From: Bugula neritina
Lineage: Eukaryota > Animalia > Bryozoa
Direction: 5' to 3'
Length of the DNA: 64,000 nt
NCBI GenBank assembly: GCA_964035545.1
Contig: OZ037765.1
Span: forward strand, 10,798,698 to 10,862,697
In this document: positions 56,201 to 59,200 of the stretch, one piece after another
Position numbering within the stretch: the stretch's first letter is position 1
How the letters are laid out: every line of letters begins with the position of its first letter
The notes under the pieces: model-generated
Databases searched by the model: none
What the model saw: the letters and a program-made list of their open reading frames with translations, nothing else
Told to the model about the DNA's origin: nothing
Made by a program: the position numbers and the translations under genes

Positions 56201-59200
56201 AGGAATAACATTATCCCACCACTACAGCTCTATTTGTATGACTGCTGTGCAGTCATACAAATGCTAAACAAATCATATTATATCTATAATATTGGCATAT
56301 AAGACAGGTCTCACCGAAAATCCACTGATTAATACGGCTGTTAGTAGATTGGCAAAAATAAAATGGGAGACGATAATCCATGATATCACGTAAACGTTTG
56401 ACCATGGCTACAACATGCATTAATTGTTTTTCAACAGCTGATACATTGAGTTTGCTAACAGATCGTAATTCATTATGATAAATAAATAGAAATCTAGGCA
56501 TTAAACTCAAATCATAACTATTTTCCTATCTCTAGTATTAATAGTCACTTTGGCTTTTTATAAGAAGTTTACTTCAAAAATTATATAGTTCTATCACAAA
56601 AAGTTGTTAAGATCCTAATTGAAATTAAAAATAAAGGAAAAGAAAATATAAAAAGTCTGCAGCCATAATTGCCACAAATGTGTGTGGAGAAGAAACTAGC
56701 TGTGATCTAGTGGTTATACTACTGACTCATTAATCTCTGAGACAAATAGAGGTTTGAATCCCAGCAAGGCTATTGGTGGTGTCAGGAAGAGTATTCAATT
56801 AGAATTGCCCCTGTGCCATGGCACTCTTAATTGAAAAAAATTTTACTATCAGCTGTTCGTGCAAAGAAGGAGACTTTAAACCAAGTACATGAGGCTTTGT
56901 ATGTGTGTGTGTGCGTGTGTCTGTGTGTGTATGTGTGTTTGTGGCTGGCTAATTATTATAGCAGCTACAGTTGATACATTGCAACAAAAATTAAAAATAC
57001 TATCAATTTTTTAGCCTAATTGCTCCATCATCCAGCGTAGTAGAGAGTGGAGCTCGTAAATATTGACAGTGACAGTGTAGGAAATAGCAGCTCACTCTAT
57101 ACTGCTGTAAGAGTTTACTTCTACCGCTCTCAGATAACAAGTTTGTTTATACGATTTGTAAAAGCTCGTAGCTTCAATTATGTAACTAAGCAGCAATGAT
57201 AATACTCTACCTAATTATGTAGATTGTCATATTAAAGCCTGCATTCTAGATAAGAAATTTAGCAGACTATAAAGTGGTGTTTTCGCAAGAATTTCAACCT
57301 TGACCGTGATTTATTAAGAAAATCACCAAACTTGGTTTGCTAAAATTGTTCTCTGCCGCCCCTAATTGTTACCAACAAAAAGCTTACCCCATGGACAGCT
57401 TTAGTTGCTTTCAACTCGTTGATCGAGTTACTCAATGTGAATAAACGGAATAGATATGTAAGACACGATTGGGTTTCAGACATTCCATATTTTGTAAATC
57501 TAAAACAAGGTAATAATTAAGACTTCAAAGAGTCCAAATCAATGCATAGCACTTACTGTGCAGTTTTGTGTGTTTATAACAAATTTTTTTTATAAACTTT
57601 TTATGTTGCCACAACTCTAGGTTAACATCATATCTGTAATATCATTAAACTGTTTCGGGTAGGTGAACAAAATATTTTATGCAGGGAATTTTAAAATATG
57701 ATTCATGCAAGGGTTTGTAGCAAACTATATTTAGAATAAAATGTAGCTTGCTGTAGTGTTGAGATTACACAAGAGCCCCTGTGGTGTGCGAGCAAGAAGT
57801 CTTGAGTTTGAATCCCAAGAGGGGGAGCAAAAGTTTTATACCTGCCTCACCTGCTCACTACGTATTGAGACTTTCTTCTCTCATAATCCACAAAGAAATT
57901 CATACCAATTAGCCAGTATAGAAATGTGACTAACGTCATTAACATACTGACATAAGAGAGACTTGGTAAAGCTTGGAACACTGATTTTAGTACAGCTGCT
58001 GACTGTTGGAACATCATCATAATCCTATGTCATAAAAATAAGGAGCAGATTGAATAATATTAATGGTGCAGTGTTTCACTCATTGCAGTATTTCGTTACT
58101 TCCCTGGCCATGTCTGAACAGGTTGCCTACATTGGCAATTTAGTTAATCGATAGCTGCTGAGTCCAAATTAGGTTAAGTAAAGTACTTGGAACTTTGGAG
58201 TCTTTAGTTAACCTCAAGTCATATCTTGGACTTGCTAAAAGTCTTTGATTGGTGGCAAGTCAAAAGTAAAAATCATTTTTTGAATTTTTGCCTAATGTTT
58301 AATATTTTTAAATGAAAAATATTTAAACAAACTAAGCTATCAACAGTAGTTGAAGTTTTATTATGGCAAGTTCATTTAGGGCAAGCGTAACTGTGCAACT
58401 TCGAATTATAGCAAGAAAGTTATTAACTTGCTAGCTCTTTATTAATATTAAAACACAATTCTGCGCTATTACGAAAGAGACAAATTTCCAGGATCACAAA
58501 CTGTATTCAGGTAATTATTTTCATTTTTTTCGCTTATAGCTCTATGGAATTGTTTAAGCAAGAGTAAGCAACTCCCAATATTGCAAATAAAATCTTCTAC
58601 AAATAACATCTTCTACAAATAACATCTTCTACAAATAAAATCTTCTACAAATAAAATCTTCTACAAATAACATCTTCTACAAATAACATCTTCTACAAAT
58701 AACATCTTCTACAAATAAAATCTTCTACAAATAACATCTTCTACAAATAACATCTTCTACAAATAACATCTTCTACAAATAACATCTTCTACAAATAACA
58801 TCTTCTACAAATAAAATCTTCTACAAATAACATCTTCTACAAATAACATCTTCTACAAATAAAATCTTCTACAAATAACATCTTCTACAAATAACATCTT
58901 CTACAAATAACATCTTCTACAAAAATGGCCAATTTACATTGACTAGAAAGGACTCAAGTCATTGCTAGATGTGACTTGAATTTTCATATCATCAGCTGAG
59001 AATTCATTTGGCCTGTCCAGCTTTAGAAATTATACAAGTGCTATTACAGTCAAATTGACTAAAATTATATGTGTATAATATATTTACCTAGTGCATAAAA
59101 GCAGCCTGAGTGATTGGCATATCAGTATCTCTACTGTACTATTTTGCAGACTTAAAGGGGCTTGTTTATCATCAGTACTGTCAACGAATACTCCATTAAA

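Follow-up and report, generated by a model that had tools for sequence, protein, structure and literature searches.

The stretch of DNA analysed here (the window, 64,000 nucleotides from the genome of the bryozoan Bugula neritina) contains a channel gene that raises a question about the composition of the sperm channel CatSper. The pore subunits of CatSper carry a canonical selectivity filter of the form [T/S]x[D/E]xW (PMC8640785), and all four have been described as having one conserved filter in common (PMC13674862, PMC8640785). At this position the gene in the window reads T-L-S-N-S, such that serine stands in the place of both the acidic residue and the tryptophan. An earlier note on the same stretch took the gene to be a retained CatSper2 ortholog or paralog with an altered filter. 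The question, in other words, is whether CatSper2 itself has lost its filter in this animal, or whether a further member of the family is encoded here. The comparisons described below support the second of these, in that the gene appears to be a divergent member of the CatSper family, a paralogue whose filter is devoid of Asp and Trp.

The gene lies on the minus strand and comprises at least nine exons, with GT-AG borders and consistent phases, which together encode a six-helix channel of the Ion_trans type. Seven consecutive exons, from 59945-59751 to 55818-55656, make up an open frame of 351 codons with six hydrophobic segments, AG/GT borders and matching phases. Such a frame is not a product of chance, since by our own arithmetic ~7% of random codons would be stops at the base composition of the gene. 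Upstream of these seven are two N-terminal exons, the first of which (61218-61339, with a candidate start ATG at 61339-61337 and a gtacgt donor) encodes protein 48% identical to that of L009:748-873, a contig from a related species referred to below as species A, and the second of which (60774-60891, with a tatag acceptor, a gtgaga donor and fitting phases) is 50% identical to L009:1308-1421. The pre-S1 segment and S1 follow at 59751-59945 in an exon which is open, has phase 0/0 and is 45-55% identical to its counterparts in species A and C. The next exon, 59338-59518, encodes S2 together with the beginning of S3 and has orthologues in species A and C; the remainder of S3, its loop to S4 and S4 itself are encoded at 59088-59223. 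Thereafter come the S4-S5 linker and S5 (57851-58024), the pore exon (57388-57499), the S6 exon (56315-56407) and a first C-terminal exon (55656-55818), which is charged, helical and possibly coiled-coil, begins N-V-R-K-K-L and has exit phase 1, the frame running on beyond it. A tentative last exon with a stop codon, at 54880-55052 on the same strand, is one of several phase-compatible continuations. Three exons match the Pfam Ion_trans profile collinearly, at profile positions 25-77 (the S2 exon, E 0.0011), 109-151 (the S5 exon, E 2.4e-4) and 205-234, and these matches together with the six hydrophobic segments identify a single six-transmembrane Ion_trans domain.

The surroundings of the exons have some features of their own. 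A minisatellite (58584-58923) of 21 copies of a 16-base unit with 97% matches occupies part of the intron that separates the exons of S4 and S5. Fragments resembling a tRNA-derived SINE, recognised by eye, lie in introns on the minus strand at 57760-57850 and 56700-56830, and a similar element is present in the orthologous intron of a second related species, B (L007 ~1500-1585). A run of ~30 G, interrupted by one C, is found upstream of the S1 exon at 60400-60432. Farther downstream of the gene are a long (GT)n microsatellite (51950-52130) and, on the same minus strand at 40009-46500, exons which by their translations, judged by eye, are DNAJC13/RME-8-like.

The anomaly itself resides in the pore exon, which is read on the minus strand from 57499 to 57388, where a split Arg codon completed by one base is followed by the frame FTKYGMSETQSCLTYLFRLFTLSNSINELKATKAVHG. 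The pore helix ends LFRLFTL, after which S-N-S stands where D-x-W would be expected, and the TLSNS so formed (57438-57424) falls exactly at the filter position. Its counterparts are TLDGW in two canonical CatSper-type genes of the same genome (L049 and L067, see below) and TLDHW in mouse CatSper2. The exon is bordered by ttttag as acceptor and gtaagc as donor, and its phases, 2 on entry and 0 on exit, are an exact fit to the S5 exon at 58024-57851 and the S6 exon at 56407-56315; the plus-strand frames of 57388-57499 are full of stops. The earlier note's reading of an open pore exon with TLSNS at 57424-57438, between open and correctly phased S5 and S6 exons, is therefore borne out by the exon chain, to which the strand, absent from that note, can now be added. 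A hidden, frameshifted TLDxW at the locus was ruled out by a motif scan of the minus-strand frames and of the exon candidates: [TS]x[DE]xW occurs in no minus-strand frame of window positions 55000-62000, and there is no alternative pore exon between S5 and S6, where, from 38 phase-compatible AG..GT candidates, only variants of the 57388-57499 exon resemble a pore helix.

The residues most conserved in the family, namely the filter Asp and Trp and also the Asp of S3, are gone from this gene, and no solved structure gave a match to its pore exon. Both features would be in keeping with a gene that is in decay in this species, either an unprocessed pseudogene or a relaxed duplicate, in which the changes in the pore loop are early neutral damage without function. 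Several observations make this account quite unlikely. Each of the nine exons has an open frame, the GT-AG sites are intact and the phases match, and the pore helix is identical over seven residues to that of the canonical paralogue L049. Moreover, the gene has orthologues whose exons are, in species A and B, clearly constrained.

These orthologues emerged from an exhaustive protein search with the S5 exon, which returned three exon-sized relatives (P0001-P0003, 48-58% identity), together with three long proteins of 1,433-2,156 residues, each with three or four matched stretches, which were taken as four-domain channels; a full-length CatSper was not among the results of this search. Together with three further contigs that a metagenome scan supplied, those of P0001-P0003 stand for three related species from marine metagenomes, A (L004, L009-L011), B (L005-L007) and C (L008), one source sample being a marine biofilm metagenome. 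On these contigs the N-terminal, S1, S2-S3, S3-S4 and S5 exons occur in the same order as in the window, at 37-59% identity. Contig variants within species A and B differ by 0.3-0.9% in the exons as against 2.1-4.6% in the flanking DNA, such that in two of the three species exon divergence is 4-13 times below that of the flanks, and five partly overlapping comparisons in the same two species give 9 synonymous and 3 non-synonymous codon changes. Because the same exons are found in three species and, in A and B, diverge less than their flanks, the gene family is, on these comparisons, an old one, and purifying selection acts on it at least over the part from the N-terminus to S5.

The pore loop itself lies beyond the reach of these contigs. 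L004-L011 stop 200-790 bases past S5 and carry no pore-like exon, and the cluster members include no longer contigs. The pore and S6 exons were recovered from no other species, and Asp and Trp may therefore have been lost in this genome only, or recently. A word-based protein search with the frames of the pore, S6 and S5 exons was blank, but with the S5 exon it failed to return even P0003, a relative already known, although this protein (57 aa) was inside the permitted length range and has a ten-residue run identical to the S5 exon frame; blanks of the word search on such short exons are thus not readable as absence.

The voltage sensor of the gene is degenerate. S2 keeps its Asp and Glu, whereas the usual Asp of S3, which both L049 and L067 keep (W-N-x-x-D), is absent, and S4 has only two Arg, six residues apart. 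The two-Arg S4, with the motif C-R-L-x-L-C-[TS]-R-I-M, and the S3 without Asp are common to species A, B and C, and since they are held in common at 37-59% identity these peculiarities of S3 and S4 are old and maintained, which further argues against decay. From the lack of the S3 Asp, voltage sensing of the usual kind appears improbable.

With respect to family, it is the S5 and S6 exons which are informative. Among solved structures the S6 exon matches mouse CatSper2 best (16 bits, E 0.14), ahead of bacterial sodium channels at 14 bits and CatSper1 at 11 bits; for the S5 exon CatSper2 is the best single-domain protein, as it is for a profile of four orthologous S5 exons (A1), the match to the profile being raised to E 0.002. 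CatSper3 and CatSper4 are never among the solved-structure matches of these two exons, and the pore, S2-S3, S1, N-terminal and C-terminal exons or profiles have no CatSper match among solved structures. The ESM Atlas returned generic Ion_trans clusters only. A supposed likeness of the N-terminus to human CatSper2 was dropped, the solved-structure search having given no CatSper match. In view of the Ion_trans matches and of the CatSper2 matches on S5 and S6, the protein is, by these criteria of similarity, a very divergent CatSper relative.

It might still be argued that the gene belongs to some other family of single-domain voltage-gated-like channels and that its likeness to CatSper2 is generic Ion_trans similarity, given that the E-values to CatSper2 are modest, that on the S5 exon the total scores of four-domain sodium and calcium channels are above that of CatSper2, and that a bacterial sodium channel is a close second on S6. 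The probability of this is very low. For both informative exons CatSper2 is top per single domain, the four-domain channels outscoring it only through the summing of up to four domains. Furthermore, the pore helix is identical, and S6 is similar, to those of the genome's own canonical CatSper genes. Among voltage-gated-like channels the gene is thus nearest to CatSper, albeit weakly (S5 profile E 0.002, S6 E 0.14; Z 4.9-10.5 in five of six comparisons).

Whether CatSper2 itself has lost its filter can be answered directly from the remainder of the genome. The pattern F-T-[LF]-D-x-W has 46 matches genome-wide, a number not above control, of which two lie inside real channel genes. One of these genes, L067 (C4:24328958-24332065, plus strand), comprises S2, S3 with W-N-x-x-D, S4, S5 and a single exon for pore and S6 (C4:24330422-24330727, plus strand), which reads LFTLDGW and T-N-F-Q-R-I-R-S-E-V. 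This exon aligns with mouse CatSper2 at E 6.9e-12 (48.8 bits), as against only 23.6 bits with CatSper4, and in the alignment mouse CatSper2 shows T-N-F-Q-N-I-R-S-E-L and LFTLDHW, the latter being just what the earlier note had given for the mammalian protein. By this similarity L067 is the genome's canonical CatSper2 orthologue, and the best CatSper2 match of the genome is accordingly the C4 gene rather than the gene in the window, which reaches 15-21 bits per exon against CatSper2. Since a normal CatSper2 exists elsewhere in the genome, the window gene is best regarded as a divergent extra relative and not as CatSper2 gone wrong. The proposal of a retained CatSper2 ortholog is consequently not supported, while the alternative of a paralog, offered at the same time, survives, and the second, canonical CatSper2 for which that note suggested a search is found on C4. 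What stands of the assignment to a CatSper2-family subunit is the CatSper-type six-helix architecture, CatSper2 as the nearest solved relative, and the replacement of the filter Asp and Trp by Ser.

The second real channel gene, L049 (C3:4540708-4543725, minus strand), is likewise of canonical CatSper type: S3-S4 and S5 are present, the pore reads LFRLFTLDGW and S6 ends in N-N-F-V-Q-I-R; its introns are rich in microsatellites. Exon-wise local alignment with shuffling controls relates the window gene to both genes, the Z scores against L049 and L067 being, respectively, 6.8 and 4.9 for S5, 6.3 and 2.4 for the pore, and 7.0 and 10.5 for S6, whereas L049 and L067 are closer to each other (pore Z 12.7, S6 Z 11.3). 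The identity to L049 over LFRLFTL is complemented by a post-S6 motif, x-[IV]-R-x-x-L, which is common to the window gene, L049, L067 and mouse CatSper2, whereas mouse CatSper4 has T-N-L-E-Q-M. From these scores and shared motifs, therefore, the window gene is a third FTL-type member of the family, and no close copy of either L049 or L067. Nor does the assembly contain a close paralogue of its S5 exon or of its pore exon.

Other components of the channel, or candidates for them, are also encoded in this genome. A nearly intron-free gene at C7:12672260-12672898 (plus strand) has a single Ion_trans domain (114 bits) overlapping a match to TQDGW, the filter type of mouse CatSper4, and is by this motif a candidate CatSper3 or 4. 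Of the auxiliary subunits, CatSper-beta is represented by CATSPERB_C in three collinear exons (58, 21 and 40 bits) at C7:929799-931362 (plus strand), and a delta/epsilon-type subunit by a CATSPERD beta-propeller exon (31 bits) at C2:25473946-25474173 (minus strand); the Pfam model of CatSper-gamma is without a match in the genome. The auxiliary subunits for which the earlier note had asked are thus found in the case of beta and the delta/epsilon type, though not of gamma.

This inventory gives some weight to another explanation, in which the window gene fills one of the four canonical CatSper positions (as CatSper1, 3 or 4, or as a co-orthologue of CatSper2) but has strongly diverged, such that three Asp and one Ser would make up a filter ring of altered ion selectivity. 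Besides the window gene three alpha candidates were located, those on C4, C3 and at C7:12672260-12672898, which with the window gene makes four, and it is well established that an asymmetric filter is tolerated in four-domain relatives, the DEKA ring of sodium channels being an example. The count, on the other hand, comes from insensitive genome searches. The Ion_trans scan, in which 150 of 222 candidates were scored, missed all three CatSper genes read here, and the canonical-pore profile search found the C3 and C4 genes only, missing the window gene as well; because both searches passed over known CatSper exons, more alpha genes may exist. Moreover, in its FTL-type pore helix and the x-[IV]-R-x-x-L after S6 the window gene agrees with the CatSper2-type genes and departs from the TQDGW and T-N-L-E of mouse CatSper4, and its matches to solved structures are to CatSper2 and, weakly, CatSper1, never to CatSper3 or 4. 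A canonical position thus appears rather unlikely. As regards the weaker loci, a filter-motif scan of twenty weak Ion_trans loci that were fetched gave no single-domain TxDxW pore, and three such loci, when read closely, were CNG-, EAG- and IP3R-type channels. A weak S5 match at C3:3620713 (L002, C3:3619213-3622332) was discarded as the S4-S5 region of domain IV of a sodium channel, the four-domain exons of which span C3:3595768-3621983.

The account that we favour, and which is on balance probable, is that the window gene is an intact, old and divergent CatSper-alpha-like paralogue without a filter carboxylate, coding for a modulatory or pore-dead subunit. In the channel superfamily Ca2+ is bound with high affinity at a site made up of the acidic side chains of the filter, and the loop is braced by the Trp against the subunit next to it. 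The window gene keeps the pore helix, S5, S6 and the helix after S6, with a pore helix and an S6 still of the kind usual in the family, and its product may well still adopt the fold of a pore-domain subunit and take a place in a tetramer or complex of the CatSper type. In that setting it would present Ser in place of a carboxylate, leaving the ring one carboxylate fewer, and because of this substitution it would not be expected to contribute to the high-affinity Ca2+ site. A tetramer which included it might then have a lower Ca2+ selectivity, or might not conduct at all, and the role of the subunit would be modulatory, selectivity-lowering or non-conducting.

A more specific proposal, tentative and in our estimation unlikely, is that bryozoans have a conserved fifth, filter-less CatSper-alpha-like subunit which co-assembles with the others, either replacing one Asp of the ring or acting as a pore-dead sensor or scaffold. 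Were this true, the sperm channel could switch between a Ca2+-selective form and a less selective or silent one, and a heteromeric route would have been taken to the filter asymmetry which four-domain channels reached by mutation. In the searchable literature no paper was found on a further CatSper alpha-type subunit, on a filter-less one, or on CatSper in bryozoans. If conserved, a CatSper-like subunit devoid of Asp and Trp would amount to a natural test of the number of carboxylates required in the CatSper filter, and would show whether pore-dead subunits regulate CatSper, a channel otherwise hard to express. The first reading of the locus is in any event corrected, in that CatSper2 itself keeps its filter in the Bugula neritina genome.

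Returning to the favoured reading of a divergent paralogue, it is instructive to set the gene beside known systems. With CatSper2 (mouse, 7eeb_B and 9ubw_B) it has in common a single six-helix Ion_trans domain, an FTL-type pore helix and few S4 charges, and the sequences after S6 are alike, Q-N-I-R-S-E-L in mouse and Q-R-I-R-S-E-V in L067 as compared with N-V-R-K-K-L in the window gene. It differs in that the Asp-His-Trp of CatSper2 is replaced by Ser-Asn-Ser, in that the S3 Asp is absent, and in a very low overall similarity. L067 and L049 belong to the same family, and in them S5, pore helix and S6 are arranged as in the window gene, but with TLDGW, the S3 Asp and a more standard S4. The window gene is no nearer to one of them than to the other; in L067, moreover, pore and S6 are encoded in one exon, whereas in the window gene they are split over two. 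The remaining comparison is with the asymmetric filters of four-domain channels, DEKA in sodium channels and EEKE in NALCN, in which one of the four pore loops is non-acidic, with the consequence of a lower Ca2+ selectivity. These channels keep the Trp in every domain, whereas the window subunit has lost it as well, and they are single polypeptides. In having one pore loop without an acidic residue they would nonetheless be its closest functional analogy, if indeed the subunit joins a tetramer.
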